This document shows, piece after piece, positions 2,062-28,890 of a DNA stretch of 64,000 bases. The translations under genes were made by a program, and so were the position numbers. The notes under the pieces were generated by a model. It ran no database searches. It had not been told where the DNA came from and saw nothing but the letters and a program-made list of their open reading frames with translations. Origin of the DNA: Macrostomum lignano (lineage: Eukaryota). The stretch spans positions 34,897-98,896 of the forward strand of contig NIVC01000125.1 in NCBI GenBank assembly GCA_002269645.1, written 5' to 3'. The first letter of the stretch is position 1, and every line of letters begins with the position of its first letter.

Positions 2062-4180
2062 TCATTTTTTGATCTCGCTTGGAGCATTGGCAGAGTCTGG
2101 CTGGTAGCCGGAGTTGTTGAAGTACTCGTAGTTGTACGGAGGCGGCTGCGGCTCCAACGGCTGCTGCTGCGGCACCGAGCTCGGGTTTGAGATTTGAGGA
2201 GGAGGCGGCTGCATCGAATTCGGGTAGGCGGCTGGAGCCTGCATCGGATTCGGGTAGGCGGCTGGAGCCTGCATCGGGTACGAGCCCGGAGGCGGTGGCG
2301 GATTGGCCGCGGACGCAACGGCAGCAACGGGTAATCCGCCCGCCATTTGGTTTCGGCGGGCCATCAGTCTGGAAGTTCGTTGTCGATAGATTCGATAGCC
2401 TAGAATGGAGCCGCCCACGACAAAGATTAAGGCTAGGAAAGCTGGCCAGTAGCGCCTAAAAATCAGCGTCACTTCAGAGGGATTGGCCTCGGACCACTCT
2501 TTGATGTAGAATGATAGTCTATTTGGATTGTAAAACTTGTTGGCCGGTGTGCCGCCTTTTGGAGCGGAGCACAGCTGGGCAAAGTTCGAGTAGCAGTCGG
2601 CTCGATATAACGAGCCGGTCTGGTAAAAAACGCATGGACAGTCGCTTGTTCCTGAGCAGTACGATGGAGTCTTCGGCACGTCGTACAGCCTGTGGTGGGG
2701 TTGGTGCGATATGCTCTGTAACTGATTTATTTTTATTTATAGCGAGTTGTCTTAGTGACAAGCTGAGAAAATTCGTAAAAAAATAGCGCAGTGCATGGGC
2801 TTTTGGACTAAACACACGATGAATAAAAAATTAAAGCTTTAGTTTCGGAAAATAAATTTAGAAGTGCCCCGAGACAGCTTATTTTGGAGATTGTAGCCTA
2901 GTGGTTCGAGCGTTGGACTCACGACTGAAAGGTCGGGGGTTCGATTCTCGTCCCAGTTGGAACAATTTGTGTTCTTGAGCAAGATACTTAACTCTGCATT
3001 GCTTCAGTTCACCCTTTGGCGACATCGTCCAACAACCAGCACTGACGGCAACTCTGCCCATTCCGCTGACTCATGAGCACATGCTGGTACAAAGGCGCGG
3101 ATACTGTACGCTGGCACGCACGCATTCACATTGTGTACAGCGGCCCTGACTTTCTAATCGTCAGGCATGTACACTCTCTGTAACTCGGGGGTTGGCCTTC
3201 ATGGCTGTGAATCGCACAACAACCTCCGTAAGCCAATCGCACGAGCCCCAAATGAATGAGCACGGAATCGAACCACAGAGGTCTCCGCGCGAGAGTCGAG
3301 CGCGTTTACCGATGAGCTGCCCTACCCCGCTTTTTTAGGAAGGCTTCAGTGCGATTGCCTACTAGACCTAATGTACATGCAACTTATGGTTAATCGCAAA
3401 CTTCAGATCGATCTTAACTTAGGCCGGTTTTTAAGTGCTCTCAGTGAGCCGCCACCTGCTAGATCAATCGGACACTCACGACATGTGAAAGGGCTCGCCA
3501 GTGAGGAAGTACAACTTGGTATTCTTGGAGCTGTACTCCATGACGCCGACCCAGTAGGGCCTGCTGTCGGCAACCAGAGCCTCCAGGGTGCCTGTGCTTG
3601 TAAAGTCGATGGCGAGGTTCGCCTGCAGCATGCGGCACAGCTCAAACGCCTGGTCGAAGGTGACCAAATCGTTCTTTGCCGGGTTTCCGTAGCAGACGGA
3701 GCCGCTGCTGCGCCATCCGTACGGGCAGTCACCGCTAAAGATTGGCGCCACGGACAGCAGCGCCGAAGGCTCCATCGAAGGCGGAGCATCGGAGACCAGA
3801 CGAGCCTCGAACCAGCTGCCGGATCCAACAATAAGATGCCGACAGCCAACTGTTGACGTAGATGAATTTGTCACCTTCAAAATCTGCGAACGGGTGGCGT
3901 TCCTGATGGTTAGCGAGTTCGATCCGGACAGCTGAAGGCTGTCAATAGCGACTGAGAAGCCGGTGCTGCTGCGGGTGGCGCTGAAGTTCAATGCGTGAAC
4001 GAAGCTGGAGCAGCCGCTTGTGGCATTGACAGTCAGCTGGGCTGATGTGTGAGAGGAGATTCTCAGCTGTTGATAGCTCTGGCAGCGGGTGGCAGTCGCC
4101 GTGGCAACGATGCTGAGCGCCGTTGCCAGTAGCAACGGGAACGCGACCGGTGAAAATCGAGGATTCTGAAATGCGGCCAT
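2062..4180 (-). CDS. Receptor paralog A (signal peptide, CUB-like, C-type lectin-like, TM, PPxY tail); exons 4180-3480 and 2721(or 2715)-2062; apparent 1-nt frameshift at ~2702
   Basis: Exon 1 has CPYGW..CYG..C..LQANLA..YWVG and ends TC|GTGAGT (phase 2). Exon 2 has CPCVFY..C..QLCS, TM (YWPAFLALIFVVGGSILGY) and PPPY. Joined length 1361 nt is 1 short of in-frame; paralog B has ACC AAA CCC where A has ACC AA CCC. Confidence 0.8.
2885..3014 (+). mobile_element. tRNA-derived CORE-like SINE (family 1), 3'-truncated
   Basis: A box TAGCCTAGTGG, B box GGTTCGATTCT, then GTGTTCTTGAGCAAGATACTTAACTCTGCATTGCTTCAGTTCACCC resembling the CORE domain. Related copies at 4250 and 33135. Confidence 0.75.
3015..3330 (-). 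mobile_element. tRNA-derived SINE (family 2), most complete copy, with central hairpin domain
   Basis: On the minus strand: A-box-like CAGCTCATCGG (3319-3309), B box GGTTCGATTCC (3274-3264), body with GTGTACATG-CCTGACGATTAGAAAGTCAGG-GCCGC-TGTACAC shared by at least 6 other loci in the window. Confidence 0.7.
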
Positions 4181-4249
4181 TTCTAAGTGTATAAATTGAA
4201 TGCTAACTCGAATCTATTTGAATAAACAGAAAATATAGTATACTGCTAC

Positions 4250-4392
4250 TGCCTGATGGCTTAGTCGTTAGAGCGTCGGACTCAAGACTGAAAGGTCGGG
4301 GATTCGATTCTTGACTACTCACTCGGAACAATTTGTGTCCTTGAGCAAGAAAGTTAACTCTGCATTGCTTCAGTTCATCCAACTGTAAAATG
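4250..4392 (+). mobile_element. CORE-like SINE (family 1)
   Basis: tRNA-like head followed by GTGTCCTTGAGCAAGAAAGTTAACTCTGCATTGCTTCAGTTCATCCAACTGTAAAATG. Confidence 0.75.
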
Positions 4393-5080
4393 CTAGCAAA
4401 GTGGTAGAATGTCAGACTGATTTAATAGTATTTTGGTTAACTAACTTATTTAAGACTATATATAAATAATAGACGTACTCCACGTAGTCAATAGCCTAAT
4501 AATGAAAAATTATTGCAACAAAAACTTCTTTTAATGGAGAAAAAATCGATTCATATTGAATTTTATTGCTTGGGAATGCTTAGTGTTCAGGTTATAAACT
4601 GTTGCAGATAAACGCATCCGTAAAAAATAATTTTGGGTTATAAATGACTAGAAAAAACATATTGGGTTGCAAGCCACAAACCAGTGTTGAATAATAAAAA
4701 AGTTAAGATTTACCACACAGATTTTTAAGGCAAATGAGCCTTCAAAAAAATCTGATAGGTTATAAAAAGCAATACCAATTAGGCGCTTATACAGTCCTAT
4801 AAAATACGATCTTTGAAGCCAATAGCTACTTCGGATAAAACGGCTGGTTGTTGCAAAAAAAGCGACACTTTTACGCTGGTGCAGGCGAGTGAAAAACCAT
4901 AAGCCAAACTAGAAATCTAAAAAGTAACCATGCAAGGTGCTGAAAATTTGAATAGGAAAATATGATTTATTGTGTATTGATCAGAATAAGAGCTCAGTTG
5001 CTTGTAAATAGAAACTTATCATATGTTATTTATGACAAAAAATTATGAAAAATATAGATTTTCATATTCATGAGATTGGT

Positions 5081-7140
5081 CACTCCTGATCCGCCCTACG
5101 AGAATCACTCCTGATCCGCCCTACGAGAATCACTCCTGATCCGCCCTACGAGAATCACTCGTGATCCACCCTATGAGAATCACTCCCTGATCCACTCTAT
5201 GAGAATCACTCGTGATCCACCCTATGAGAATCACTCCTGATCCACTCTATGAGAATCACTCCTGATCCACCCTATGAGAATCACTCCTGATCCACTCTAT
5301 GAGAATCACTCCTGATCCACTCTATGAGAATCACTCCTGATCCACCCTATGAGAATCACTCCTGATCCACTCTATGAGAATCACTCCTGATCCACTCTAT
5401 GAGAATCACTCCTGATCCGCCCTACGAGAATCACTCCTGATCCGCACAATGAGAATCACTCCTGATCCGCCCTACGAGAATCACTCCTGATCCGCACATG
5501 AGAATCACTCCTGATCCGCCCTACGAGAATCACTCCTGATCCGCACAATGAGAATCACTCCTGATCCACCCTATGAGAATCACTTCTAATTCGCACATGA
5601 GAATCACTCCTGATCTACCCTATGAGAATCACTCCTGATCCACCCTATGAGAATCACTCCTGATCCACCCTATGAGAATCACTTCTAATCCGCACATGAG
5701 AATCACTCCTGATCCACCCCATAAGAATCACTCCTGATCCGCACATGAGAATCACTCCTGATCCGCACCATGAGAATCACTCCTGATCCGCACATGAGAA
5801 TCACTCCTGATCCGCACAATGAGAATCACTCCTGATCCGCCCTACGAGAATCACTCCTGATCCGCACAATGAGAATCACTCCTGATCCGCCCTACGAGAA
5901 TCACTCCTGATCCGCACATGAGAATCACTCCTGATCCGCACCATGAGAATCACTCCTGATCCGCACATGAGAATCACTCCTGATCCGCACAATGAGAATC
6001 ACTCCTGATCCGCCCTACGAGAATCACTCCTGATCCGCACAATAAGAATCACTCCTGATCCGCCCTACGAGAATCACTCCTGATCCGCACATGAGAATCA
6101 CTCCTGATCCGCACATGAGAATCACTCCTGATCCGCACAATGAGAATCACTCCTGATCCGCACAATGAGAATCACTCCTGATCCGCACAATGAGAATCAC
6201 TCCTGATCCGCACATGAGAATCACTCCTGATCCGCACAATGAGAATCACTCCTGATCCGCACAATGAGAATCACTCCTGATCCGCACAATGAGAATCACT
6301 CCTGATCCGCACAATGAGAATCACTCCTGATCCGCACAATGAGAATCACTCCTGATCCGCACATGAGAATCACTCCTGATCCGCACAATGAGAATCACTC
6401 CTGATCCGCACATGAGAATCACTCCTGATCCGCACAATGAGAATCACTCCTGATCCGCCCTACGAGAATCACTCCTGATCCGCACAATGAGAATCACTCC
6501 TGATCCGCCCTACGAGAATCACTCCTGATCCGCACATGAGAATCACTCCTGATCCGCACATGAGAATCACTCCTGATCCGCACCATGAGAATCACTCCTG
6601 ATCCGCACAATGAGAATCACTCCTGATCCGCACAATGAGAATCACTCCTGATCCGCACATGAGAATCACTCCTGATCCGCACAATGAGAATCACTCCTGA
6701 TCCGCACAATGAGAATCACTCCTGATCCGCACAATGAGAATCACTCCTGATCCGCACAATGAGAATCACTCCTGATCCGCACAAAGAGAATCACTCCTGA
6801 TCCGCACATGAGAATCACTCCTGATCCGCACATGAGAATCACTCCTGATCCGCACAATGAGAATCACTCCTGATCCGCACAATGAGAATCACTTCTGATC
6901 CGCACATGAGAATCACTCCTGATCTGCACAATGAGAATCACTCCTGATCCGCACATGAGAATCACTCCTGATCCGCACATGAGAATCACTCCTGATCCGC
7001 ACATGAGAATCGCTCCTGATCCGCACATGAGAATCACTCCTAATCCGCACATGAGAATCACTCCTGATCCGCACATGAGAATCACTCCTGATCCACCCTA
7101 TGAGAATCACTCCTGATCCGCACAATGAGAATTACTCCTA
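5081..7140. repeat. Minisatellite, 21-22 bp unit (GAGAATCACTCCTGATCC + GCACAT/GCACAAT/GCCCTAC), about 95 copies
   Basis: Direct tandem repeats in the A-B spacer. Confidence 0.97.
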
Positions 7141-7365
7141 ATCCGTCGGTGAGAATTGTTTTGTCCACAATGGCCTGTTCTTTTTCACAAAGCTCCACCT
7201 TGTTTCGAAGCTGAAACAACTAAATAAAAAAGAATGATAAACCAAATACCAGATAAACATCAACAGAGGTAAATTATAGAAACAGCCATCACGGCAACAA
7301 TTGTAAAGCACTCCAATTCCGATAAAACGGTTCTGACTATTAACATTCTCGTATGTCGATGAGTT

Positions 7366-9768
7366 TCACTTCTTGTTGTCGCTCGGTTCAGCGTCACCAG
7401 CAGCGGCCGAGTCAGGCTGGTAGCCGGAGTTGTTGAAGTAACTGTACGGAGGCGGCTGAGGCTCCGGCGCCTGCGGCTGTGGCGGCACGGAGTTCGGGTA
7501 GGAGACTGGAGGAGGCGGCGGCTGCATCGGGTACGAGCCCGAAGGCGGAGGTGGTGGCGAAGTAGCCTGCGTCGGATACGAGCCCGGAGGCGGCGGCGGA
7601 TTGGCTGCGACGGTCGACACGCCGACAGGCATCTGACGCCGGCGCTCCATCATTCGAACGGCGCGCATTCGAAAAAATACGCGGAAACCGATGGCCGAGC
7701 CGGCCACCACAAGGCCGAAAACGAAGAAAGCCGGCCAGAAGCTGCTGAACCGAAGTATCCATGCGGTTGGGTTGTCGCTCGTCCGCTGTCCGATATAGAC
7801 TGAGATTAGCTGGGGATTGTAATACTTGGCCGGTCGGCCGACATTTGGAGCGGAGCACAGCTGGGCAAAGCGGGAGTCGCAGCTGGCTCGATAAAACGAG
7901 CCGCTGCGGTAGAAGACGCATTCGCAGCTGCTGGACCACGAGCAGTACGATGATGACTTCGATACCTTGGACAGCCTGCGGTGGGGTTTGGTGCGATCTC
8001 CCAGTTTGAATGTGACTATTACAGTTGCACTGATTCATATGGTGAGCTTACATGTATGCCTGTTTGCACTAAAATACAGATGGCTAAAATAACAAATCTT
8101 TGCAGGAACGGCTGTGGGCTTCCTGGCGCAATGGGCGCCCATTCTGCTGACTCCCGGGGCACATATGAGCGTAATAGCAGCAATTAGTAACATTAGTAGC
8201 TTGCTATCTGGGGGGGGTAGCTATCTAGGGATTCTTTCTATCCAGGGATGCTTGCTGTCTGAGGGACGCTTTCTATTAGGGATTCTTTCTATCCAAGGAT
8301 GCTTGCTGTCTGAGGGACGCTTTCTATCTAGGGATTCTTGCTTTCTGGGGGTGTTTGCTATTTGGGAGGAATGCCTGCTATCTTTGCAAAGGCTTTATTT
8401 TGTTGTTTCGTTTTGTTGCTTTTAGAAAAAAGAGATTCATAGCAAACAATTTTGTCCGTGACAATTTTACTCCAATAAGGCGTTTTTTAAAACTGAAAAC
8501 TGAAGGACTTGGTTCTTAAGAAAATGTGCTTTTTGAAAGGATTTGCATAAGTTTTGCTCCTTGCTTATTGGCCGCCCCAAAAGGGGCTTGTGTGCGAAAA
8601 TTAGCCTGGGGGTTGCTGTGCGATTCACAGCCATGAGAGCCAACCCCAGGGCACAGGGGGTGTACATGCCTGACGATCGGGGCTACTGTACACCCTGTGT
8701 GAGCGTGTATATGAGTGCGTGTCTGCGTACAGTATCCACGCGTTTGTACTCTTGTGTGCTCAGGAGTTTTGGAACGATGGCGTCGAATAGGCCTGTTGGC
8801 AACAGGGTGCCCGCAGACCTCCTTCAATAGCTCAGCTTCTCATCCTCTTTACCATTTCATCTTAGTCTGATTCTATCTGTCATGTCCTACGAGTATTTAA
8901 ATTGGACTCTGCACACATCAAAGACTTCTCTGTACCCGGCCATTTAAAACAATAACAGATCGAGACATTTGATGTAGTTTCCGTCACAGGAAAGCAGTGG
9001 CATATAAAGAAACGAAACTTCTACTTATGTTTGACAGAGGTGGCTGGAGAAAAAAAACACCTACGGCATATAGAAGGACTCGCCATTGAGAAAGTACAAC
9101 TTGGTACTCTTGGAGCTGTACTCCATGACGCCGACCCAGTAGGGCCTGCTATCGGCAACCAGAGCCTCCAGGGTGCCTGCGCTTGTAAAGTCGATGGCGA
9201 GGTTCGCCTGCAGCATGCGGCACAGCTCAAACGCCTGGTCGAAGGTGACCAAATCGTTCTTTGCCGGGTTTCCGTAGCAGACGGAGCCGCTGCTGCGCCA
9301 TCCGTACGGGCAGTCGCCGCTAAAGATTGGCGCCACGGACAGCAGCGCCGAAGACTCCATCGAAGGCGGAGCATCGGAGACCAGACGAGCCTCGAACCAG
9401 CTGCCGGATCGAACAATAAGATGCCGACAGCCAACTGTTGACGTAGAAAAATTTGTCACCTTCAAAATCTGCGAATGGGTGGCGTTCCTGATGGTTAGCG
9501 AGTTCGATCCGTACAGCTGAAGGCTGTCAATAGCGACTGAGAAGCCGGTGCTGCTGCGGGTGGCGCTGAAGTTCAATGCGTGAACGAAGCTGGAGCAGCC
9601 GCTTGTGGCATTGACAGTCAGCTGGGCTGATGTGTGAGAGGAGATTCTCAGCTGTTGATAGCTCTGGCAGCGGGTGGCAGTCGCCGTGGCAACGATGCTG
9701 AGCGCCGTTGCCAGTAGCAACGGGAACGCGACCGGCCCGAGTAAAGAGGGTGACAGAAAATGAAGCAT
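7366..9768 (-). CDS. Receptor paralog B; exons 9768-9065 and 8029-7366 (455 aa)
   Basis: Donor CC|GTAGGT and acceptor AATCAG|T join in phase 2. Hand translation has no stops: CECVFY..C..QLCS, TM FWPAFFVFGLVVAGSAIGF, tail with PPPY. Confidence 0.82.
8190..8590 (+). mobile_element. Partial non-autonomous Helitron-like element with GGGATGCTTGCTATCT minisatellite (relative of 62380-62884)
   Basis: Same internal repeat and same unique block (TTTTAGAAAAAAGA.ATTCATAGCAAA..TTTGTCC.TGA) as the 62.4-62.9 kb copy; terminal hairpin GCCCCAAAAGGGGC. Confidence 0.6.
8590..8766 (+). mobile_element. SINE family 2 fragment
   Basis: GTGCGATTCACAGCCATG..GCCAACCCC..GTGTACATGCCTGACGAT..TGTACACCCTGTGTGAG matches the 3015-3330 copy. 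Confidence 0.7.
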
Positions 9769-10374
9769 TGAAAGCAAATGAAAGTATAAAAATCCGAATT
9801 TATTGATTTTTGAGCAGCCATATATCTAAGCTATGCCGAGACACATCTACTCTCGATCACCTAACTGTATCCCTGACGAAGCAAAGTCGGAAGGCATACA
9901 AAATTACCAAAATTAACTGTGACGAATATATTTGTCTTCACACAGAGTTAGATGCAAATAGTTTTGAGAAATAGAAAAACAAACCATAAATATTGTTTGA
10001 AAAAATTTGTCAGGTAGAAAGATTTGATTAAACAAAAATACGCTTACACAATAAGTGCGGTGAAAAATGGCAATTTAATATCACAGTTTGCGGAAGAATT
10101 CGCTGTACGTGTGTAAATGTTTTTTAAAAATTAATTTTTTTTATAAAAATGCCTGCTATCTATATATACTACTGGCCAGGCTATCTAACATATTTAAAGA
10201 GAAATAAGGCATTTTCGCACAAAAGTAGAAAAAATACGTTGCATAAAAGGCTGTTAGACACACTCTAAATAGGACCGTTAATATGAGGCAATACGTGCGT
10301 TGCAAAAAAATCTTTTTTTTCAGCGTATAAAGTAAAAGTTCATAATATTTCATAGTTATACAATTATTTCAAAA

Positions 10375-11045
10375 AAACCTTCGGACACTACAAGACTGAC
10401 CCTTTCGGACACTGCAAGACTGACCCCTTCGGACACTACAAGACTGACCCCTTCGGACACTACAAGACTGACCATTTCGGACACTACAAGACTGACCATT
10501 TCGGACACTACAAGACTGACCATTTCGGACACTACAAGACTGACCATTTCGGACACTACAAGACTGACCATTTCGGACACTACAAGACTGACCATTTCGG
10601 ACACTGCAAGACTGACATATTCTGACACTACAAGACTGACCCATTCGGACACTACAAGACTGATCCATTCGGACACTACAAGACTGATCCATTCGGACAC
10701 TACAAGACTGATCCATTCGGACACTACAAGACTGACCCATTCGGACACTACAAGACTGATCTATTCGGACACTACAAGACTGATCCATTCGGACACTACA
10801 AGACTGATCCATTCGGACACTACAAGACTGACCCCTTCGGACACTACAAGACTGACCCCTTCGGACACTACAAGACTGACCATTTCGGACACTACAAGAC
10901 TGACCATTTCGGACACTACAAGACTGACCCCTTCGGACACTACAAGACTGACCATTTCGGACACTACAAGACTGACCATTTCGGACACTACAAGACTGAC
11001 CCCTTCGGACACTACAAGACTGACCATTTCGGACACCCGACACTG
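10375..11045. repeat. Minisatellite, 24 bp unit (TCGGACACTACAAGACTGACCATT), about 27 copies
   Basis: Direct tandem repeats in the B-C spacer. Confidence 0.97.
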
Positions 11046-11153
11046 ACCTTTTCAGGCATTCAGAATAACAATAATTTTAAGAACACAGCCAATCACATCT
11101 AAACCGCAGAAAGCCATCCAAAGATCGATGAGCACTCAACAACCGACCAAATT

Positions 11154-13318
11154 CTAAGCTTTGTCGTAGGCTGGCGGTGGATCCGAAGGCATCCTGTTGT
11201 AGGCGGGCGGTTTCGGCTCCATAGAAACGGCGCCCGGCTCGTTAGCGCCAATGCCAGGGCTGTAGGCGCCGAGGCCGTAGGATCCGGCTGGCTGGGTCGG
11301 ATAGCTGCCGGGCGGCGCCGTGCAATGCGAGTTGGCTGGCGCCGGCGCCACCGGCTGAGCGGCGCCGTCAGCGGTCATGGCGTAGTTGGCGGCAACAGGG
11401 GCACCAGACCGGGAATTGGCAACGGCTCGGCGGTACCAGAGGTATCGAATGCCAAAGCCGATCCCAGTTAAAGCGGCTGCAACAGCCAGCCCAATAATCC
11501 AGTAGTAGTTGAACGTGAAGCTGGCATCGCCGATTCCCAGGCTTTTGTCCAGCGTGCTCAAATTGTAGAATTTCGCATCCCCGCCGGGCCGGCTGCTGCA
11601 CAGGTAGCGCAGCATCTGAGCGCAATAATTCCGATAGAACGAGCCCGCGCTAAAGTACACACAGCGGCAGTTCCCGCCAAAGCAGGTGTACGTACTCGAA
11701 CCCTTGAACGTTATGGAGCTGCTGGATCTGAAATTATTGGGTTTGCAGGATGGTGTGAGCTGCAATATGGAAGATTATTCGCTGCGGGCCACCCTGGTGC
11801 AACGCCTTCCTTCGGAGACATCGTCTTATCAGCCAGCGCTGACGGCGATTCTGCCCGTTCCGCTGACTCCTGAGCACAAAACAAGCGCACCAATACTGAA
11901 CGCAGCCACGCACTCACACACGCGCTTCCACAGGGTGTACAATAGCCCTGACTTCCCAATCGTCAGGCATGAACACTCTCTGTGCCTTGGGGATTGAACC
12001 TCATGACTGTGAATCGTATTTTCACGCACAAGCACTTGCAACACAAAACGCCCAGTAGACGTCACTAAACTCCGGATAAAAACCTGCTGGTTTGTAGCAC
12101 AGAAGCTGAAGCAACCCATCCATTGTAGAAGCTGTCACTATCCAGGAAAAACAGAAGCTGAAGCAACCCACCCATTGTAGAAGCTGTCACTATCCAGGAA
12201 AAACAGAAGCTGAAGCAACCCACCCATTGTAGAAGCTGTCACTATCCAGGAAAAACAGAAGCTGAAGCAACCCACCCATAGTAGAAGCTGTCACTATCCA
12301 GGAAAAACAGAAGCTGAAGCAACCCACCCATAGTAGAAGCTGTCACTATCCAGGAAAAACAGAAGCTGAAGCAACCCACCCATAGTAGAAGCTGTCACTA
12401 TCCAGGAAAAACAGAAGCTGAAGCAACCCACCCATAGTAGAAGCTGTCACTATCCAGGAAAAACAGAAGCTGAAGCAACCCACCCATAGTAGAAGCTGTC
12501 ACTATCCAGGAAAAACAGAAGCTGAAGCAACCCACCCATAGTAGAAGCTGTCACTATCCAGGAAAAACAGAAGCTGAAGCAACCCACCCATAGTAGAAGC
12601 TGTCACTATCCAGGAAAAACACGCCTTTGGAGGTGTCGGCCACACCAACCCAGGTATCTTGACCTGTCGGCCAGGTCGTCGTGCTGGCCAGACCCAGTAC
12701 GTCGGCTGTTGAAGAGACAAAGCCCAGCGCCAAATTGGCGCGCACGTAACGGCAACCAACGGCAGCGTTGGTGAAAGTGGCCCGCGAGTTATTTGGATGC
12801 GCGGCGCCGTAGCAGAGACCGTCTCTGTACAACCAGCCAGCCGGACAGGCGCCAGTCTTGACCAGTTCAACGTCCAGCACGATGCTGTCGGGGTAATAAG
12901 AAAACGAAGAAGATAACGCACGGGTGAAAAGCTTAACGTAAAATTTGTTGCTAGGGGTGGCAAATGCCCGATAGTCAGTTTGATTATCCGTGGTAACCAA
13001 GGCCAACGGAGCCGAGCCGAACTCGGGCCCGATGCTGAATACGGACAAGCGTTTAGACAGGCTGCTGCTGAGGCGCACGTAAAAGTACATCCCGCCGACG
13101 CCGTGGAACTCGGCGTGGCAATAGCTAATGTTGACCAGGTTCAGCTCCACGCTAAATCTGGTGGTGCCGTTGTAGGCTGAAGAGTTGATGCTCACTATGG
13201 CCGGTCTGCCTGTTCTGTGGGTGCAGCCGTAGCGGTCAACAGCCTGGCTGAGCAATGGAACGGCTAGGAGCAGCGAGGACAAAACAAAAATAAGAAACTG
13301 CAGCTGCCGGTGACACAT
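11154..13318 (-). CDS. Receptor paralog C; exons 13318-12588 and 11727-11154 (434 aa)
   Basis: Signal peptide, CPAGW..CYG, donor GG|GTGGGT, acceptor TTTCAG|A in phase 2; CRCVYF..C..YLCS, TM YYWIIGLAVAAALTGIGFGI, two PPAY motifs. Confidence 0.87.
11805..12020 (-). mobile_element. SINE family 2 fragment in paralog C intron
   Basis: Plus strand TTCCGCTGACTCCTGAGCAC..CAGGGTGTACA..CCCTGACTTCCCAATCGTCAGGCATG..TCATGACTGTGAATCG aligns with 3015-3220. Confidence 0.7.
12105..12620. repeat. 52 bp tandem repeat made of the last 33 nt of exon 1 plus the first 19 nt of the intron of paralog C, about 10 copies
   Basis: Minus-strand unit GTTTTTCCTGGATAGTGACAGCTTCTACTATGG|GTGGGTTGCTTCAGCTTCT. Confidence 0.95.
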
Positions 13319-18519: not shown

Positions 18520-21500
18520 ATCCTGTTCTTTCACTTGGGAAATAGATTAGCAATCTATCCTTTTGTTTTACTTGGGAAATAGATTAGCAATCCATTCTGT
18601 TCTTTTACTTGGGAAATAGATTAGCAATCCATCCTGTTCTTTCACTTGGGAAATAGATTAGCAATCTATCCTTTTGTTTTACTTGGGAAATAGATTAGCA
18701 ATCCATTCTGTTCTTTTACTTGGGAAATAGATTAGCAATCCATTCTGTTCTTTCACTTGGGAAATAGATTAGCAATCTATCCTTTTGTTTTACTTGGGAA
18801 ATAGATTAGCAATCCATCTTGTTCTGTCACTTGGGAAATAGATTAGCAATCTATCCTTTTGTTTTACTTGGGAAATAGATTAGCAATCCATCTTGTTCTG
18901 TCACTTGGGAAATAGATTAGCAATCCATCCTTTTGTTTTACTTGGGAAATAGATTAGCAATCCATCCTTTTGTTTCACTTGGGAAATAGATTAGCAATCC
19001 ATCCCGTTCTGTCATTTGGGAAATAGATTAGCAATCCATTCTGTTCTGTCACTTGGTAAATAGATTAGCAATCCATTCTGTTCTGTCACTTGGGAAATAG
19101 ATTAGCAATCCATCCTGTTCTTTCACTTGGGAAATAGATTAGCAATCCATTCTGTTCTGTCACTTGGGAAATAGATTAGCAATCCATTCTGTTCTGTCAC
19201 TTGGGAAATAGATTAGCAATCCATTCTGTTCTTTCACTTGGGAAATAGATTAGCAATCTATCCTTTTGTTTTACTTGGGAAATAGATTAGCAATCCATCT
19301 TGTTCTGTCACTTGGGAAATAGATTAGCAATCCATCCTTTTGTTTTACTTGGGAAATAGATTAGCAATCCATCCTTTTGTTTCACTTGGGAAATAGATTA
19401 GCAATCCATCCCGTTCTGTCATTTGGGAAATAGATTAGCAATCCATTCTGTTCTGTCACTTGGTAAATAGATTAGCAATCCATTCTGTTCTGTCACTTGG
19501 GAAATAGATTAGCAATCCATTCTGTTCTTTCACTTGGGAAATAGATTAGCAATCCATTCTGTTCTGTCACTTGGGAAATAGATTAGCAATCCATTCTGTT
19601 CTGTCACTTGGGAAATAGATTAGCAATCCATCCTGTTCTTTCACTTGGGAAATAGATTAGCAATCCATCCTTTTGTTTTACTTGGGAAATAGATTAGCAA
19701 TCCATTCTTTTCTGTCACTTGGGAAATAGATTAGCAATCCATTCTGTTCTGTCACTTGGGAAATAGATTAGCAATCCATTCTGTTCTGTCACTTGGGAAA
19801 TAGATTAGCAATCCATTCTTTTCTGTCACTTGGGAAATAGATTAGCAATCCATTCTGTTCTGTCACTTGGGAAATAGATTAGCAATCCATCCTGTTCTTT
19901 CACTTGGTAAATAGATTAGCAATCCATCCTTTTGTTTTACTTGGGAAATAGATTAGCAATCCATTCTTTTCTGTCACTTGGGAAATAGATTAGCAATCTA
20001 TTCTGTTCTGTCACTTGGTAAATAGATTAGCAATCCATTTTGTTCTGTCACTTGGGAAATAGATTAGCAATCCATTCTGTTCTGTCACTTGGTAAATAGA
20101 TTAGCAATCCATTCTGTTCTGTCACTTGGGAAATAGATTAGCAATCCATCCTGTTCTTTCACTTGGGAAATAGATTAGCAATCCATCCTTTTGTTTTACT
20201 TGGGAAATAGATTAGCAATCCATTCTGTTCTGTCACTTGGGAAATAGATTAGCAATCCATTCTGTTCTGTCACTTGGGAAATAGATTAGCAATCCATTCT
20301 GTTCTGTCACTTGGGAAATAGATTAGCAATCCATTCTTTTCTGTCACTTGGGAAATAGATTAGCAATCCATCCTGTTCTTTCACTTGGGAAATAGATTAG
20401 CAATCCATCCTTTTGTTTTACTTGGGAAATAGATTAGCAATCCATTCTTTTCTGTCACTTGGGAAATAGATTAGCAATCCATTCTGTTCTGTCACTTGGG
20501 AAATAGATTAGCAATCCATTCTGTTCTGTCACTTGGGAAATAGATTAGCAATCCATTCTGTTCTGTCACTTGGGAAATAGATTAGCAATCCATCCTGTTC
20601 TTTCACTTGGGAAATAGATTAGCAATCCATCCTTTTGTTTCACTTGGGAAATAGATTAGCAATCCATTCTTTTCTGTCACTTGGGAAATAGATTAGCAAT
20701 CCATTCTGTTCTGTCACTTGGGAAATAGATTAGCAATCCATTCTGTTCTGTCACTTGGGAAATAGATTAGCAATCCATTCTGTTCTGTCACTTGGGAAAT
20801 AGATTAGCAATCCATTCTTTTCTGTCACTTGGGAAATAGATTAGCAATCCATTCTGTTCTGTCACTTGGGAAATAGATTAGCAATCCATCCTGTTCTGTC
20901 ACTTGGGAAATAGATTAGCAATCCATTCTGTTCTGTCACTTGGGAAATAGATTAGCAATCCATTCTTTTCTGTCACTTGGGAAATAGATTAGCAATCCAT
21001 TCTGTTCTGTCACTTGGGAAATAGATTAGCAATCCATCCTGTTCTTTTACTTGGGAAATAGATTAGCAATCCATCCTTTTGTTTTACTTGGGAAATAGAT
21101 TAGCAATCCATTCTGTTCTGTCACTTGGGAAATAGATTAGCAATCCATCCTTTTGTTTCACTTGGGAAATAGATTAGCAATCCATCCTTTTGTTTCACTT
21201 GGGAAATAGATTAGCAATCCATTCTGTTCTGTCACTTGGGAAATAGATTAGCAATCCATTCTGTTCTGTCACTTGGGAAATAGATTAGCAATCCATTCTG
21301 TTCTGTCACTTGGGAAATAGATTAGCAATCCATTCTGTTCTGTCACTTGGGAAATAGATTAGCAATCCATTCTGTTCTGTCACTTGGGAAATAGATTAGC
21401 AATCCATACTGTTCTGTCACTTGGGAAATAGATTAGCAATCCATTCTTTTCTGTCACTTGGGAAATAGATTAGCAATCCATCCTGTTCTTTTACTTGGGA

Positions 21501-23050
21501 AATAGATTAGCAATCCATCCTTTTGTTTTACTTGGGAAATAGATTAGCAATCCATTCTGTTCTGTCACTTGGGAAATAGATTAGCAATCCATTCTGTTCT
21601 TTCACTTGGGAAATAGATTAGCAATCCATCCTTTTGTTTTACTTGGGAAATAGATTAGCAATCCATTCTTTTCTGTCACTTGGGAAATAGATTAGCAATC
21701 CATTCTGTTCTGTCACTTGGGAAATAGATTAGCAATCCATTCTGTTCTGTCACTTGGGAAATAGATTAGCAATCCATTCTGTTCTGTCACTTGGGAAATA
21801 GATTAGCAATCCATTCTTTTCTGTCACTTGGGAAATAGATTAGCAATCCATTCTGTTCTGTCACTTGGGAAATAGATTAGCAATCCATCCTGTTCTGTCA
21901 CTTGGGAAATAGATTAGCAATCCATTCTGTTCTGTCACTTGGGAAATAGATTAGCAATCCATTCTGTTCTGTCACTTGGGAAATAGATTAGCAATCCATT
22001 CTGTTCTGTCACTTGGGAAATAGATTAGCAATCCATCCTGTTCTTTTACTTGGGAAATAGATTAGCAATCCATTCTTTTCTGTCACTTGGGAAATAGATT
22101 AGCAATCCATCCTGTTCTTTCACTTGGGAAATAGATTAGCAATCCATCCTGTTCTTTTACTTGGGAAATAGATTAGCAATCCATCCTTTTGTTTTACTTG
22201 GGAAATAGATTAGCAATCCATTCTGTTCTGTCACTTGGGAAATAGATTAGCAATCCATCCTTTTGTTTCACTTGGGAAATAGATTAGCAATCCATTCTGT
22301 TCTGTCACTTGGGAAATAGATTAGCAATCCATTCTGTTCTGTCACTTGGGAAATAGATTAGCAATCCATTCTGTTCTGTCACTTGGGAAATAGATTAGCA
22401 ATCCATTCTGTTCTGTCACTTGGGAAATAGATTAGCAATCCATTCTGTTCTGTCACTTGGGAAATAGATTAGCAATCCATTCTGTTCTGTCACTTGGGAA
22501 ATAGATTAGCAATCCATTCTGTTCTGTCACTTGGGAAATAGATTAGCAATCCATTCTTTTCTGTCACTTGGGAAATAGATTAGCAATCCATTCTGTTCTG
22601 TCACTTGGGAAATAGATTAGCAATCCATCCTGTTCTGTCACTTGGGAAATAGATTAGCAATCCATTCTGTTCTGTCACTTGGGAAATAGATTAGCAATCC
22701 ATCATGTTTTGTCACTTGGGAAATAGATTAGCAATCCATTCTGTTCTTTCACTCGGGAAATAGATTAGCAATCCATTCTGTTTTGTCACTTGGAAAATAG
22801 ATTAGTAATCCATCCTCTTGGGAAATAGATTAGCAATCCATTCTGTTTTGTCACTTGGAAAATAGATTAGCAATCCATCCTCTTGGAAAATAGATTAGCA
22901 ATCCATCCTCTTGGAAAATAGATTAGCAATCCATCCTCTTGGGAAATAGATTAGCAATCCATCCTCTTGGGAAATAGATTAGCAATCCATCCTCTTGGGA
23001 AATAGATTAGCAATCCATCCTCTTGGGAAATAGATTAGCAATCCATCCCG
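18520..23050. repeat. Large minisatellite, 37 bp unit (CACTTGGGAAATAGATTAGCAATCCATTCTGTTCTGT), about 120 copies, ending in a shortened ~28 bp unit
   Basis: 4.5 kb of direct repeats in the D-E spacer. Confidence 0.98.
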
Positions 23051-23193
23051 TGTCCTCCTCATGGAGATCAAGCTTCATCGCTTATTAGTTTGCATCAGAG
23101 AATTAGACAAATATGAATTGTGAGTCATGTCAATGATTGTTGTGAATTTTTACACTCATTCAGTTAAACGGGTTCATACTTCAAAAGTGCCGC

Positions 23194-25246
23194 CTAGTTG
23201 TTGCCTTCGGGCGGCGGCATCGGCTGATTTGGCATCCCAGCGGCAGCTTCATACGGCGGCGGCTTGTCGCCGACGTCGGCATCGGTTGGAGCGCTGGCGG
23301 CAGTGCCGGGCGGCGGCATGTACCAGGCATTGTAGGCCGGCGGCATCGGCGCTCCCGCGGCGGCGGGATTCGGATAGTTAAAAGACGAATTGTCGTAGGC
23401 GGCCGGCTGCTGCAGCGGCGGTGGCGGCGGGTGCTGCTGCTGCACCGGGTAGCTGCCGGGCGGTGCCGGCGGCAGGTCGCTACGAGTTCCAGCGCCAGTT
23501 CCGGCCGTTTCGCGCCGTCGCTGAGCTGCCACAGCCCGATGGTAGAACGCCATCCGGGTGCCGAACACGGCGAGCACGGTGAGGCCGCCGATGATCAGGC
23601 CGATGGACCAGTAGGGAAACGAGAAAAAACTGCTCGAAGACTTTTTGCTACTCAGAGTCCGGTCAAGCGTAGTGAGGTTGTGGAATTCGCTCTCTCCGCC
23701 GATGCTGCTGCTGCACAAGTAGCGAAGATACTTCCAGCAGTTCTCGCGGTAGTACGAGTTGAATCTGTAGATCACGCAGCGGCAGCTGCCAGTTGAACAG
23801 CCGGAGCTACTGGAGCTTGAGCTGTAGAACTTGAGACTACCGCTAGAGCTGAAAAATCGGGAGCAGAGGGAGGGAGTGAGTAATAAATGTTCAGTATAGG
23901 AGCTTAGGCATTAACTACGATGCAACTAGCAATAGAGTCAATTGGTAACAAATTGAGACAAGTAGCTTGATGTTAATTAGTTCACCTGATAAGAGAGTAA
24001 GACACTGTAGAGATAATTGATGTTAATTAGTTCACCTGATAAGAACGTAAGACACTGAGAAGATAATTGATGTTAATTAGTTCACCTGATAAGAGAGTAA
24101 AACACTGTAGAGATAATTGATGCTAATTAGTTCACCTGGTAAGAGCGTAAAGCACTATAGAGATAATTGATGTTAATTAGTTCACCTGATAAGAGAGTAA
24201 GACACTGTAGAGATAATTGATGCTAATTAGTTCACCTGGTAAAAGCGTAAGACACTATAGAGATAATTGATGTTAATTAGTTCACCTGATAAGAGAGTAA
24301 GACACTGTAGAGATAATTGATGCTAATTAGTTCACCTGGTAAAAGCGTAAGACACTATAGAGATAATTGATGTTAATTAGTTCACCTGATAAGAGGGTAA
24401 GACACTGTAGAGATAATTGATGCTAATTAGTTCACCTGGTAAAAGCGTAAGACACTGTAGAGATAACTGATGATAATTAGTTCACCCGATAAGAACGTAA
24501 GACAGGAAGCTGTTGTGCTCTGCTTACCTCACGAGAAACTTATTGGCGTCCAAAAAGTACACTCCAGACGAAGAGTCGGCGGCCCCAAGCCACACCTTTG
24601 TCAAGCTAGACCAGCCTGAACTCGAAGTTGCCGATTTAAGCGCGCTGCTGGAGTCAAAGCTCAAGGCTAAATTAGCTCGCACCTGGCGGCACGCGCCGAG
24701 GGCGGTATTAAAAGTGGTCCCTGATGCGTCGGGACGCGCAGAGCCGAAGCACTTATTGTTGTAGGAGACCCACCAGGATGGACAGCCGTGAACGGCCTCA
24801 ATGTCTAGCATGATCAGCTCGTTGTAGAATGGAGACGGCAGGCTGCTGGACAAGATGGCGTACAGGCTGTTTCCAGGCGTGGCGAATGCCCGGTACACGG
24901 TATCATTGGAGGAAGTCAGGGAAGCAACGAACTCGCCTCCAGAGCCATGGTTGGTGCTCAGGCTGAGCCGCGTATACGTTGACTTCAGGCTGCCGTTGAC
25001 CCGGATGTAATAATAGGCGGATGTTAGCAGGTTGTTGCGGATAAGCACGTGGCATGTTGGTACAGCTTCGCTGATTTCTAGTCGAAGGCCAAACTGGGTT
25101 TCCGTTGGAGTGAAGTAGGCAGGGCTGGACCCATCGCTGCAGTTGTACACGGGAAACGAGGCGCTTTGGCTAGAAACGCCTGGCAACAGAATCAGCGGCA
25201 GCAGAAGCAGCTGCAGCAGGAACACTGGATGCTCGAGGCGACACAT
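23194..25246 (-). CDS. Receptor paralog E; exons 25246-24528 and 23848-23194 (457 aa)
   Basis: ATG at 25246, donor AG|GTAAGC, acceptor TTTTTCAG|C in phase 2; CPSWW..CFG, CRCVIY..C..YLCS, TM YWSIGLIIGGLTVLAVFG, PPAY and PPPY. Confidence 0.88.
23965..24505. repeat. Intronic minisatellite, 50 bp unit (AGATAATTGATGTTAATTAGTTCACCTGATAAGAGAGTAAGACACTGTAG), about 11 copies
   Basis: Fills most of the paralog E intron. Confidence 0.96.
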
Positions 25247-25314
25247 TGCCGATTGAGGCTGAAGTGGCAAAAGAAGATTGTTGCATTTATTACAATTGAT
25301 TGCTCATAAACCTA

Positions 25315-26355
25315 GGAGAGGCAGATTCAATGAGTTGAGGAAGAGCTGAGACTCTGAGAGGCACATTCAATGAGTTGAGGGGGAGCTGAGAGGCAGATTC
25401 AATGAGTTGAGGGGGAGCTGAGAGGCAGATTCAATGAGTTGAGGGGGAGCTGAGAGGCACATTCAATGAGTTGAGGGGGAGCTGAGAGGCAGATTCAATG
25501 AGTTGAGGGGGAGCTGAGAGGCACATTCAATGAGTTGAGGGGGAGCTGAGAGGCAGATTCAATGAGTTGAGGGGGAGCTGAGACTCTGAGAGGCAGATTC
25601 AATGAGTTGAGGGGGAGCTGAGAGGCACATTTAATGAGTTGAGGGGGAGCTGAGAGGCAGATTCAATGAGTTGAGGGGGAGCTGAGAGGCAGATTCAATG
25701 AGTTGAGGGGGAGCTGAGAGGCAGATTCAATGAGTTGAGGGGGAGCTGAGAGGCAGATTCAATGAGTTGAGGGGGAGCTGAGAGGCACATTCAATGAGTT
25801 GAGGGGGAGCTGAGAGGCACATTCAATGAGTTGAGGGGGAGCTGAGAGGCACATTTAATGAGTTGAGGGGGAGCTGAGAGGCACATTCAATGAGTTGAGG
25901 GGGAGCTGAGACTCTGAGAGGCAGATTCAATGAGTTGAGGGGGAGCTGAGAGGCACATTCAATGAGTTGAGGGGGAGCTGAGAGGCACATTCAATGAGTT
26001 GAGGGGGAGCTGAGAGGCAGATTCAATGAGTTGAGGGGGAGCTGAGAGGCAGATTCAATGAGTTGAGGGGGAGCTGAGAGGCAGATTCAATGAGTTGAGG
26101 GGGAGCTGAGAGGCAGATTCAATGAGTTGAGGGGGAGCTGAGAGGCAGATTCAATGAGTTGAGGGGGAGCTGAGAGGCAGATTCAATGAGTTGAGGGGGA
26201 GCTGAGAGGCAGATTCAATGAGTTGAGGGGGAGCTGAGAGGCAGATTCAATGAGTTGAGGGGGAGCTGAGAGGCAGATTCAATGAGTTGAGGGGGAGCTG
26301 AGAGGCAGATTCAATGAGTTGAGGGGGAGCTGAGAGGCACATTCAATGAGTGAGC
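25315..26355. repeat. Minisatellite, 32 bp unit (GCTGAGAGGCAGATTCAATGAGTTGAGGGGGA), about 32 copies
   Basis: Direct tandem repeats in the E-F spacer. Confidence 0.97.
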
Positions 26356-26944
26356 TTCACAAGGAACTGAGAACAAAGAAAGAAAAACAAAAATTAACAA
26401 ATAAATATACGGGTCTATCGCAATAAGCTTTACAAAGGCACATGAACAGACAATCTTTAGAGCCGCTGATCCCACTTTTACGGGTTTGAGAAAGAAAATA
26501 AGATTATGTTACAAAGATCTAAGATTAAACAGTACAATATAAACTGAGAACTTTTGATTTTTTGCAAAACATTTTTGCCAGAAAATTACGACTATTGGAC
26601 GGATGAACTAGACACAGCAGCAGTAGACATTCGCAACAATGTACTTTATAAACTAAGAAAATGTAGTCTTTGTTAAATAAATACAAGAATACTTGTATCT
26701 GAAGGTGTGAAGGAAAAAATGTAAAAAAAATTACAGGTTACACAAAAACAATGCAAAGTATGCCAGAAATATTTGGCCACATAAAATAAGCGATCACAGC
26801 GAAGCAATGCATCGAGAGTCTGCAGACCAGGGAAATAGTTTAGTCTGTCAGGTAGCTGGTGCTGCTCCATAAGGGCCAGGAATTCCGCTCATTTCAACTA
26901 ACAGATTAGCAAGATAGGCAACAAGCGATGCAACTTCGATGCCA

Positions 26945-28594
26945 TCAGGCTTCGCTGGCGCCACCGTCGTCGCCAAAGGCGGCCAGAGCGGCAGCGTAGG
27001 ACGGCGGAGGCTCCGGCTGGTTCGGGGAGTCCTCGACCGAGTCGGCTGATGCGGCGGTCAGCGCGGACGGACTCGGCGTGGCTGCGGCTGCCGCTTCAGC
27101 GTAGCTCGGAGGTCCTTCGTCATCATCTGGCGGAGCGTACAATTCAGCACCGGTGCCGGACTCTGCTGCATTGGTTTCCATGACAACCGAGTCCGAGTCT
27201 ATTGAGTTCAAAATCTCCGACACCGCAGCCGCCACATCGTAGCTCGGCGGGCCGCCGTCGGCCGAATCGTCCACTGCGACGTCAATGTTTCCAGGATCCG
27301 TAGCAACGGTTGCCGTAGCAACTGACTCAGTCTGAGAGTTTGCCACATCTTCCAGATCGGGCGTGCCGCCATCGCGCACGCCGCTGGCAGCTCGAGAACG
27401 CGTGAATCGCAGACACCTGCGCAGCCGGGACCGAATTCGGCTCAGGCAGGTGCGCAGTCGCGAGGCCGGCCTGCTGGTGGGGCAGTCATTGTCTCGCGCG
27501 AAAAACAGCCCAAACAGGACAGCGCCAAAAAGACAGCCAAAGATTAACAGCCCGCAGCTGAAGCCGGAGCAAACTTTTTCGTCATCAGAGCCAAGAGATC
27601 CGTCCAACAAGTCATCGAGGCCGTCCAAGTCGTAAACCGGTCGGACTAAACAGTCAGCGCAGCCGCTGCACAGGTAGGGCAGCTTCTTGTCGCAGTCAGC
27701 CAAGAAGTATTCGCCCTTAGCAACAAACACGCAGCGGCAAGACCAGCGCGAACAGTTCATCGAGATGCCGTGGCTGAAGTCCCGAGACTCTTCCACCCTG
27801 CAGAGAAAAAGTTTCGATTCAATCGATTTAAAAAAGATCGCAAAAATGCTCATTAACTAGTAGAAGACTCACACAAGAGGCAGCCCGAGCTCCTTGGCAC
27901 TGAGAAAGTACACCGAGTACTTGCTGGCTGCCGCCCCGATCCACACCGGCTGATCGGGTGGCCAGCCTGAGGCGGACAGGCCGCTCCTCAACTCACTGAC
28001 GGACCCGAAGTCCATCGCCAGGTTGGCTCCCACGTGACGGCACCCAGTCACCGCCTCGTCGAACGACGCAAACGAGTTCTCTACAGACGCCGCACCGTAG
28101 CAGCTGCCGTTGCTGTAGAACCAGTTCCTGGGACACTTCGTCACCAGCTCGATGTCCAGCAGCACCTCATCTGATGAGCCCGCCAGAGATGGGCTGCTCA
28201 GGCTGGCATAGATGCTCCAATACTGCACTGCGAATGCTCGGTACAAGCCCTGGTTTTTGTGCGTCACCATGGCGACCTGCGAGCCGCCGAGCTGGCGAGT
28301 GCGCAGAATCAGCACTGAGGACTGATGGCGAAGCTGGCCGATCAGTCTGACATAGAAATGCCACCTGCTGGCTCCGGTGGCGCTGCCGACAAGCAGCGAG
28401 TGGCAGGAGCGGCTGCCGCCTGCGCCGCCGATGCTCAACCGCAGCTGCAGCGACTCGCCGGGCCGGATCGACCTCGGAGCTGGCGATCCTGCGGCTGCGT
28501 TGCTGCAGTTGAGCAGCGGCCCGCCGCCCGCCACCACCAGCGGCAGCAGCAGCGGCAGCAGCAACAGCAGCGACAGAGGCAGATTGGCTTGTGA
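26945..28594 (-). CDS. Receptor paralog F; exons ~28594-27873 and 27797-26945; in-frame ATG not found
   Basis: Leu-rich signal-like stretch, CPRNW..CYG, donor GT|GTGAGT, 75-bp intron, acceptor CTCTGCAG|G in phase 2; CRCVF..C..YLCS, TM, long acidic tail with three PPSY motifs. Confidence 0.8.
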
Positions 28595-28890
28595 CTGAAA
28601 GCATAATTTACAGAATAATATTAGATGCCTTGGACTGAAGTGCCTACTACATATATATAGTAGAAGATTCGAGCCAGCGAAATTAGCAAAACTCTCTTAG
28701 ACGATGTGAAATTTCCAGATTATGAAGTTTCTAGCTTGTCTGTTTTGGTCTTAGGTCTATCAAAATTTAAATAAATCGACAAGAAAACTGCACAGTTTTT
28801 CGAGAAACAAGACAAAATGCAATGTTCTACTTTGCCGATCGGTTTAACGCTTTTTCACTTTCGTCAGAAAATGCAATTCTACGAGCCAAT

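Follow-up and report, generated by a model that had tools for sequence, protein, structure and literature searches.

Six putative type I receptors with CUB-like and C-type lectin-like domains and PPxY tails encoded in a tandem array of Macrostomum lignano

Receptors with C-type lectin-like domains (CTLDs) are among the chief means by which animals accomplish non-self and cell-cell recognition, and the mechanistic knowledge about them stems almost entirely from vertebrate type II receptors. Type I receptors in which an N-terminal CTLD or CUB domain serves protein recognition include layilin, chondrolectin, CD302 and the group XIV proteins CD93/CLEC14A as well as neuropilins, DCBLD2, CDCP1 and LRP3/12, all of them equipped with a short signalling or trafficking tail. 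To our knowledge, none of these carries a CUB domain directly in front of a CTLD together with a PPxY tail. The PPxY motif is a generic class I ligand of WW domains. In CYYR1, Commissureless, WBP1 and yeast Rcr1, single-pass partners of Nedd4-family ligases, a transmembrane segment is followed by a Pro/Tyr-rich PPxY tail, as in the proteins described here; the multi-pass Ndfip has a similar mode of action. A window of 64,000 nucleotides from the flatworm Macrostomum lignano (contig NIVC01000125.1, positions 34,897 to 98,896 of the forward strand; this whole stretch is meant by "window" throughout) was analysed, in which six genes form a tandem array. With evenly balanced confidence, these are read as transcribed genes for type I CUB-CTLD-PPxY receptors of a family also found in bivalves, the tails of which are proposed to recruit WW-domain/Nedd4-family proteins.

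All six same-strand, two-exon paralogs of the original prediction were found by ORF (open reading frame) listing and strand inspection between positions 2062 and 28600 on the minus strand, and are designated A to F. Each unit consists of an exon 1 of approximately 700 nt and an exon 2 of 530 to 850 nt. The introns (790, 1089, 860, 517, 679 and 75 nt for A to F) are all of the GT..AG type and in phase 2, and their position in the alignment is always the same; the "YFL" strand of the CTLD lies some 10 residues ahead of it. Gene A (2062–4180, 442 aa) is composed of exon 1 (3480–4180), intron (2690–3479) and exon 2 (2062–2689); its CUB-like domain maps to 3728–4084, the CTLD to 2566–3727 across the intron, the transmembrane segment to 2386–2460 and a PPPY to 2134–2145. 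Gene B (7366–9768, 437 aa) has exon 1 at 9065–9768, the intron at 7976–9064 and exon 2 at 7366–7975, with the transmembrane segment at 7672–7746 and PPPY at 7444–7455. In gene C (11154–13318, 434 aa; exon 1 12588–13318, intron 11728–12587, exon 2 11154–11727) the transmembrane segment (11442–11510) is followed by two PPAY motifs (11199–11210 and 11166–11177), and in gene D (15403–17161, 413 aa; exon 1 16452–17161, intron 15935–16451, exon 2 15403–15934) the segment at 15676–15747 is followed by two PPSY motifs (15559–15570 and 15520–15531). Gene E (23194–25246, 457 aa) comprises exon 1 (24528–25246), intron (23849–24527) and exon 2 (23194–23848), with the transmembrane segment at 23554–23625, PPAY at 23332–23343 and PPPY at 23251–23262. 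For gene F (26945–28595, at least 514 aa), exon 1 spans 27873–28564 and continues as far as a TTTCAG acceptor near 28595, whereas the intron covers 27798–27872 and exon 2 26945–27797; the transmembrane segment is encoded at 27494–27568 and three PPSY motifs at 27239–27250, 27101–27112 and 26996–27007.

Searches with the six proteins against the window (tblastn) matched exactly these six loci and revealed no seventh copy in the window. Cross-paralog matches reached E-values of 1e-20 to 1e-28, and the paralogy of A to F, as judged by sequence similarity, is far beyond chance. A and B share 77% identity, the remaining pairs 23 to 40%.

Several lines of evidence connect the predicted genes to transcripts. 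The product of gene E is 100% identical to the GenBank hypothetical protein BOX15_Mlig002897g3, the spliced product of gene C is identical to UniProt A0A1I8IW30, and the exon junction of gene F is also present in the UniProt model A0A1I8GPA1 (P0003). The GenBank models of this assembly (GCA_002269645.1) were derived from a genome-guided RNA-seq transcriptome (StringTie/TACO; PMC5730564). Extensive segments of the assembly are furthermore present in duplicate, with an identity of 95% or more (PMC5730564), and a duplicate of the array (locus L001, NIVC01001008.1) harbors four called genes in conserved order (D', C', B' and A'). Gene B shares 99% nucleotide identity with its copy, and the corresponding model BOX15_Mlig019758g1 (P0004) differs from B in 8 amino acids over 426 aa. 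For a related protein of 414 aa (P0009), two sequencing runs contain RNA-type contigs of 1.5 kb in which its ORF is free of interruptions. A lack of spliced transcripts joining exon 1 to exon 2, which had been named as an outcome that would speak against the predicted genes, is thus not what was observed, since E and C match RNA-seq-derived models, the genes of the duplicate locus were called and P0009 is found on RNA-type contigs. Genes D and D' (15403–15560 of the window versus 3590–3690 of the duplicate locus) differ by a 1-nt indel near codon 382, so that the C-terminus of D' deviates after the second PPSY and the called product is 462 aa long, compared to 413 aa in D; the indel is either a real difference between alleles or paralogs or an assembly error.

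The order signal peptide, CUB-like domain, CTLD, transmembrane helix and PPxY tail had been predicted from the letters alone and was supported by hydropathy, by AlphaFold/Foldseek and by motif scans. The sequence motifs quoted with it were all recovered, those of the N-terminal domain in C to F and those of the CTLD in all six proteins, together with one to three PPxY and 4 to 8 tyrosines per tail; the statement that the motifs EPN, QPD and WND are not visible also held. Each protein has an N-terminal hydrophobic leader and one transmembrane segment, and the ectodomains contain 3 to 6 N-glycosylation sequons.

The second domain is, judged from its sequence and modelled structure, a long-form CTLD without a site for Ca2+ and carbohydrate. 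All six proteins share the pattern CPxGW..CYG..C..ANLA..WVG..YFL/CxCV..C..YLCS, with the intron at the slash; CPxGW..C, C, W-x-G, C-x-C-V, C and L-C are invariant. Their cysteines follow the long-form framework (C0-C0', C1-C4, C2-C3), and W-x-G represents the WIGL-type motif. With Pfam, Lectin_C was the only match to the six window proteins (best 21.5 bits versus a cut-off of 22.6, full profile coverage), while it was found in 12 of 13 family members with a best E-value of 3.2e-7. A profile of the six ectodomains retrieved 57 matches from the PDB sequences, all of them CTLDs, the best being a CTLD of the mannose receptor MRC1 (E 4.9e-7). The AlphaFold model of the gene E ectodomain (mean predicted local confidence, pLDDT, 75.5; predicted template modelling score, pTM, 0.78) consists of a beta-sandwich (residues 1–125) followed by the CTLD, for which Foldseek returned LOX-1, CD69, NKR-P1, LLT1 and Dectin-1 (E about 2e-5, TMt 0.69–0.79); the sandwich of this model was matched to CUB domains. 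No EPN, QPD or WND was detected in any of the six ectodomains by motif scan; the WND position is taken by (F/Y)-Y/F-R-x and the EPN region by a Ser-rich loop with a pLDDT below 50. The LOX-1-type and natural killer (NK) receptor-like CTLDs, the best structural matches, likewise lack the residues of the Ca2+/sugar site. The flatworm domain would therefore be closer to these protein-binding CTLDs than to a lectin, which suggests protein or particle ligands. The LOX-1/NK-type receptors differ in being vertebrate type II proteins with a neck, without CUB and PPxY, and share only 15 to 20% identity with the flatworm CTLD.

The N-terminal domain, which displays the motif C..CH..FYV..YRAFA..LDVELV in C to F, is a divergent, degenerate CUB domain according to its modelled fold. 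Modelled alone (pLDDT 84.4), it was matched by Foldseek to spermadhesin 1spp (TMq/TMt 0.63/0.70), the CUB of enteropeptidase (TMq 0.64–0.66) and the CUBs of C1r, neuropilin-1 and meteorin (TM-scores 0.55–0.62). The profile and the model also touch bacterial sandwiches of the PPC/collagen-binding type (repeat protein P0080, ColG (1nqd) and the C-domain of the C. perfringens enterotoxin (2xh6)). Bacterial collagen-binding and enterotoxin domains gave slightly lower E-values, but TM-scores of 0.35–0.54 (mostly 0.44–0.50) and a poorer root-mean-square deviation, and the likeness is probably on the fold level only, since the TM-scores are below those for CUB. Only the first disulfide pair of a CUB is retained (C39/C68 of P0001, invariant in the family), so that the canonical four cysteines are not present; the second pair is found in the bivalve homologs described below, with whose Pfam-significant CUB the flatworm domain is collinear. 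A merged UniProt model of C, D and E is labelled "CUB domain-containing protein".

Relatives were sought by an exhaustive HMMER search with the ectodomain profile against 1.84 billion representative sequences, which resulted in 126 matches. Most of these are generic multi-CTLD proteins. Apart from paralogs encoded elsewhere in the M. lignano genome, the full-length matches consisted of two proteins derived from RNA and of P0117 from a scallop, which is the only protein outside Macrostomum with both domains in this search (E 7e-4); layilin, chondrolectin, CD302, CD93/CLEC14A, neuropilins, DCBLD2, CDCP1 and LRP3/12 were not among the full-length matches. M. lignano encodes at least six further paralog types at other loci; the full-length matches from this species are Mlig018025/Mlig028623, Mlig031192/029953/003925, Mlig008649 and Mlig026538. 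Mlig018025 and Mlig028623 (P0021/P0077) form a second tandem pair with adjacent GenBank entries (PAA81173/81174 and PAA78495/78496). Orthologs of P0117 are found in Pecten, Argopecten, Ylistrum and Mytilus, all of them annotated as "uncharacterized" and with Pfam matches to CUB and Lectin_C (Mizuhopecten yessoensis LOC110453411/A0A210QHE6, Pecten maximus LOC117338375, Mytilus LOC127700880). When flatworm and bivalve sequences were combined into one query alignment, a protein of 412 aa from a marine JGI metatranscriptome (Ga0307400_10115839) was also retrieved, which has the family layout with NPTTVYVIP and the tail end PPSYDETL; P0147 has this layout.

The bivalve homologs and Ga0307400_10115839 show the same order of parts as the flatworm proteins at a length of about 400 to 450 aa. 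They have one CUB, one CTLD without EPN/WND, a stalk of the form G-x-TT-V/F-Y-x-V/I-P (G-x-TTVYSVP in the bivalves), one transmembrane segment and a tail ending in PPSY(D/E). In the flatworm, the corresponding stalk motif is GG(D/E/T)xxF(Y/H)xL/V, present in C, D, E and other Mlig paralogs (e.g. GGTSTFYTVP and GGDAKFYNLS); in short form the shared motif reads TTVYxVP/GGTxxFYxVP. Comparison of the flatworm and bivalve alignments with hhalign yielded a probability of 99.7% and an E-value of 3.2e-25. The match is collinear and comprises 361 columns, beginning at the first cysteine of the CUB and reaching as far as the terminal PPxY, and among the listed matches of the exhaustive search with at most 700 aa the stalk motif and PPxY occur together only in family proteins. 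The scallop exons, mapped from the ORF list, include a phase-2 intron in the Lys of LGDK/MD, two aligned residues downstream of the flatworm phase-2 intron, with the alignment of this loop being uncertain. A common intron is suggestive of kinship, but could be an ancient or general intron of CTLD genes. The two groups also differ: the bivalve CUB is canonical (Pfam-significant, both disulfides) and that of the flatworm degenerate, the scallop gene examined has at least six coding exons instead of two, and a single matched protein per bivalve species contrasts with the six-gene array and further loci of M. lignano. On the basis of these sequence comparisons, the array appears to have arisen by expansion, specific to this lineage, within an uncharacterised family to which proteins of pteriomorph bivalves (scallops and mussels) belong as well. 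The prediction that no named or characterised family has this architecture agrees with the Pfam results, limited to the sub-threshold Lectin_C matches, and with a full-text literature search for CUB, C-type lectin, transmembrane and PPxY, which retrieved only an unrelated review on lysosome trafficking. As an undescribed family the proteins qualify in part: no paper on the architecture was found in the literature searched, but the sequences had already been deposited as hypothetical proteins and have homologs in pectinid and mytilid bivalves. Mlig-tuf2 (Mlig020807.g2-5), an intestine-enriched gene with a "CLECT" domain and a fasting phenotype upon RNA interference (RNAi; PMC12732829), and the one such gene of M. 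lignano with a knockdown, was considered as a characterised relative and rejected, as in the protein deduced from its transcript a CTLD at the N-terminus precedes Ig domains, with neither CUB nor transmembrane segment nor PPxY.

The cytoplasmic tails are 91 to 183 residues long. PPxY motifs were counted once in A and B, twice in C, D and E and three times in F, and each of the six tails has a terminal PPxY, after which acidic residues or Ala occur; ends found among the flatworm paralogs are PPSYDAAV, PPSYNEAV, PPPYEAAA and PPAYDKA. Unlike the bivalve tails, those of the flatworm are rich in Pro, Gln and Tyr and carry extra PPxY motifs. In the bivalve proteins, A-P-P-x-Y near the C-terminus is the only invariant stretch of the tail; within "APPSY", six proteins agree without exception in A, both P and Y, and the tails are otherwise not Pro-rich. 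From this comparison of sequences, the PPxY is the one deeply conserved element of the tail.

The proteins would be type I membrane glycoproteins with a short stalk that act as recognition receptors, and we infer that their tails recruit WW-domain proteins, probably ligases of the Nedd4 type. In favour of this reading, omega of the tail is 0.24 between A and B, and the gene D tail resembles the PY-motif membrane proteins CYYR1 and RCR. By analogy to the structurally closest CTLDs, the ligand of the CUB-CTLD ectodomain may be a protein or particle outside the cell and not a simple sugar. The conserved terminal PPxY would dock the WW domains of Nedd4-family HECT ligases, and ubiquitin-dependent endocytosis and endosomal sorting would then set the surface level of the receptor and the fate of the bound ligand or of neighbouring proteins. 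Diversification of the paralogs could widen the range of ligands, while gene conversion would keep the ectodomains of A and B alike and their tails different. The immune, allorecognition, gamete or chemosensory roles suggested from the letters alone, and the suggested tie to ubiquitin, may apply to these receptors.

A number of observations weigh against this reading. Signal peptides and transmembrane segments were assigned by hydropathy only, and Pfam CUB (PF00431) gave no match at E ≤ 1 in any Macrostomum member. A single PPxY is expected at random in the Pro-rich flatworm tails with a chance of about 0.3, according to a composition-based estimate. Mlig018025, Mlig028623 and Mlig026538 have short tails without PPxY, and the tandem pair P0021/P0077 thus shows that the motif is not universal in the family. 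The tails of the array contain only 0 to 5 lysines (none in F), so that ubiquitin may be attached to something other than the receptor. The match of the transmembrane segment and tail of gene D to Pfam CYYR1 (PF10873; E 5.4e-5) reaches 24.1 bits and hence stays below the cut-off of 31. The distribution of the family is patchy, with one flatworm genus, two bivalve orders and one environmental transcript, and a search for expression data yielded no occurrence of Mlig002897, Mlig004342, Mlig023989, Mlig019758 or Mlig031472 in full texts or in the supplements of three M. lignano papers, PMC5816591, PMC12896417 and PMC7336406.

Some of these points would suit a role as ligase adaptor, which we regard as possible but unlikely. 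The proteins would then act like the PY-motif adaptors or decoys Ndfip, Commissureless, CYYR1 and yeast Rcr1, bringing a Nedd4-family ligase to other membrane proteins or titrating it, with the ectodomain selecting the partner in cis. Besides the CYYR1 match, the gene D tail showed a likeness to RCR (E 0.048) and the scallop tail weak matches to Comm and WBP-1; the scarcity of lysines and the three PPxY of gene F are in line with such a function. The gene D likeness to CYYR1 and RCR would fit a functional resemblance of the tail and is partly compositional. CYYR1 was not matched by the other five tails, and all Pfam matches of isolated tails remained below threshold and are largely compositional. 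Moreover, the known adaptors have a tiny ectodomain or none (CYYR1, Commissureless, WBP1 and Rcr1 lack a large folded one, and there is no evidence of common descent with the flatworm family), whereas about 280 folded and, as predicted, N-glycosylated residues are conserved here from flatworm to bivalve.

Recruitment of a WW protein other than a Nedd4-type ligase is improbable in our view. In that case Yorkie/YAP, Kibra, WWOX or MAGI-type proteins would be the partners of the terminal PPxY, and the receptor would be a cell-contact sensor feeding into growth or polarity pathways. The conservation of this generic WW ligand across phyla is compatible with any such partner, between which the sequence does not discriminate, and inspection of the tails revealed neither coiled coils nor motifs for binding PDZ or FERM domains. 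Little credence is given to a phosphotyrosine receptor, in which the 4 to 8 tail tyrosines (in PPSY-D/E-E, NSGYQPD and YPxQ) would be kinase substrates docking SH2 or PTB domains and their PPxY context incidental. In its favour, the terminal Tyr is followed by acidic residues (YDEA, YEES), which is reminiscent of the preferences of Src-family SH2 domains; however, no ITAM, hemITAM, ITIM or YxxPhi pattern is conserved across the family, and conservation is equally strong for the Tyr and for the two prolines in front of it. Independent acquisition of CUB, CTLD, transmembrane segment and PPxY in both groups, which would make the flatworm genes purely Macrostomum-specific, could account for the patchy distribution and the single match outside the genus, CUB and CTLD being common and often shuffled, but is implausible given that the 361-column alignment takes in the non-domain stalk motif and the terminal PPxY and that an intron of the same phase lies within two residues, though the latter may be generic to CTLD genes.

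Within the array, genes A and B differ strongly in the divergence of their exons. Exon 1 of both is 97 to 98% identical on the DNA level (dS 0.07), in contrast to 69% for exon 2 (dS 0.76), while introns and 5' flanks are unalignable. The homogenised tract of gene A (3472–4150, minus strand) corresponds to 9057–9735 in gene B and has the splice donor as its boundary. With B/B', exon 1 of A shares 98% identity, but only 95.7% with A', its counterpart in the duplicate locus, as seen in a comparison with the stretches 9968–10671 and 15860–16563 of the duplicate locus. Our reading of these sequences is that exon 1 of A and B was probably homogenised by gene conversion confined to this exon, by which the CUB and the N-terminal half of the CTLD would be kept alike, and the rest of the CTLD, transmembrane segment and tail would stay different. 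Ratios of replacement to silent substitution (dN/dS, omega, calculated with NG86) could be used for the pairs A/A' and A/B only, since the copies of B, C and D in window and duplicate locus are 99 to 100% identical and their counts too small; the paralogs C to F are saturated. Omega was about 0.5 overall, 0.24 for the tail (A versus B) and 0.2 to 0.6 for the CTLD. An excess of replacements was found in the CUB part, with counts that are not statistically meaningful (10.5 nonsynonymous versus 2.5 synonymous and 5.5 versus 0.5). The cluster had been predicted to be rapidly diversifying, which is only weakly borne out: omega is about 0.5, the replacement excess is limited to the tiny counts of the CUB part, and exon 1 of A and B is homogenised. 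An interpretation of the array as pseudogenes or artefact was rejected on the grounds of six intact frames over a conserved splice, RNA-seq-derived models and purifying selection on tail and CTLD.

Genes C and F show peculiarities in their structure. The acceptor of gene C is TTTCAG/A at 11727/11728, with which the spliced product matches UniProt exactly; an alternative acceptor at 11759/11760 was rejected as out of frame. The donor of gene C is situated within a 52-bp tandem repeat (12099–12621; 10 copies, 99% matches), in which the last 34 nt of exon 1 and the splice donor are duplicated, so that the donor context is repeated in seven copies. In the duplicate locus, the intron of the gene C counterpart is shorter by 104 nt (2 repeat units). 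Gene F has no in-frame ATG. On the minus strand of 28560–28610, the TTTCAG at about 28595 is followed by in-frame SQANLPLSLLLLLPLLLPLV..., a start resembling a signal peptide. The spliced leader of M. lignano has 35 nt with an ATG at its end (PMC8629364), and the start codon of gene F may therefore be donated by trans-splicing. An ATG at 28604, out of frame with gene F, opens a 145-aa Ala/Arg-rich ORF. Upstream of gene F, a HEAT-repeat/RTP1_C1-type gene is encoded on the same strand (28891–35400, minus), ending about 300 nt before gene F. Both genes are fused in the older UniProt model A0A1I8GPA1; transcription into a polycistronic precursor or by read-through may be the cause.

Minisatellites occupy nearly every intron and spacer of the region (5080–7145, 10380–11036, 13750–14372, 16002–16433, 17281–18031, 18515–22878, 23967–24504, 25354–26351 and 29447–30954), with units of 12 to 52 bp, up to 118 copies and lengths of up to 4.3 kb, and give rise to most of the long spurious ORFs. 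Two unrelated neighbours are encoded on the plus strand, an exon of an ionotropic glutamate-receptor-type channel (44700–45344; Pfam Lig_chan, E 1e-14) and an ORF for a universal stress protein (56162–56842; Usp, E 1.4e-23) with a Lys/Asp-rich C-terminus. When the window was scanned for Rfam families and tRNAs, no match was obtained.

The finding is real and of moderate interest. Its building blocks and the tandem expansion of CTLD receptors are familiar, lineage-specific CTLD expansions being common in invertebrates, and no long-standing question is resolved by it. It defines a type I family of flatworm and bivalve proteins, in which a CUB directly precedes a CTLD without Ca2+ site and is combined with a conserved stalk and a terminal PPxY, and provides diagnostic motifs for it. 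More speculatively, and with a rather low likelihood, an ancient spiralian recognition module (CUB-CTLD outside, PPSY(D/E) inside) may couple the binding of external proteins or particles to WW machinery, i.e. Nedd4-type ubiquitination or Yorkie/Hippo, and may have expanded in M. lignano to at least a dozen diverging paralogs, with exon-scale conversion shuffling ectodomains against tails. If this were true, expansion and shuffling would represent the pattern expected of immune, self/non-self or gamete-recognition receptors. According to a published description, stable transgenesis is at present available in no flatworm other than M. lignano, and RNAi is in use, so that a link from a lectin-fold ectodomain to WW-domain/Nedd4 proteins would be directly testable in this organism.

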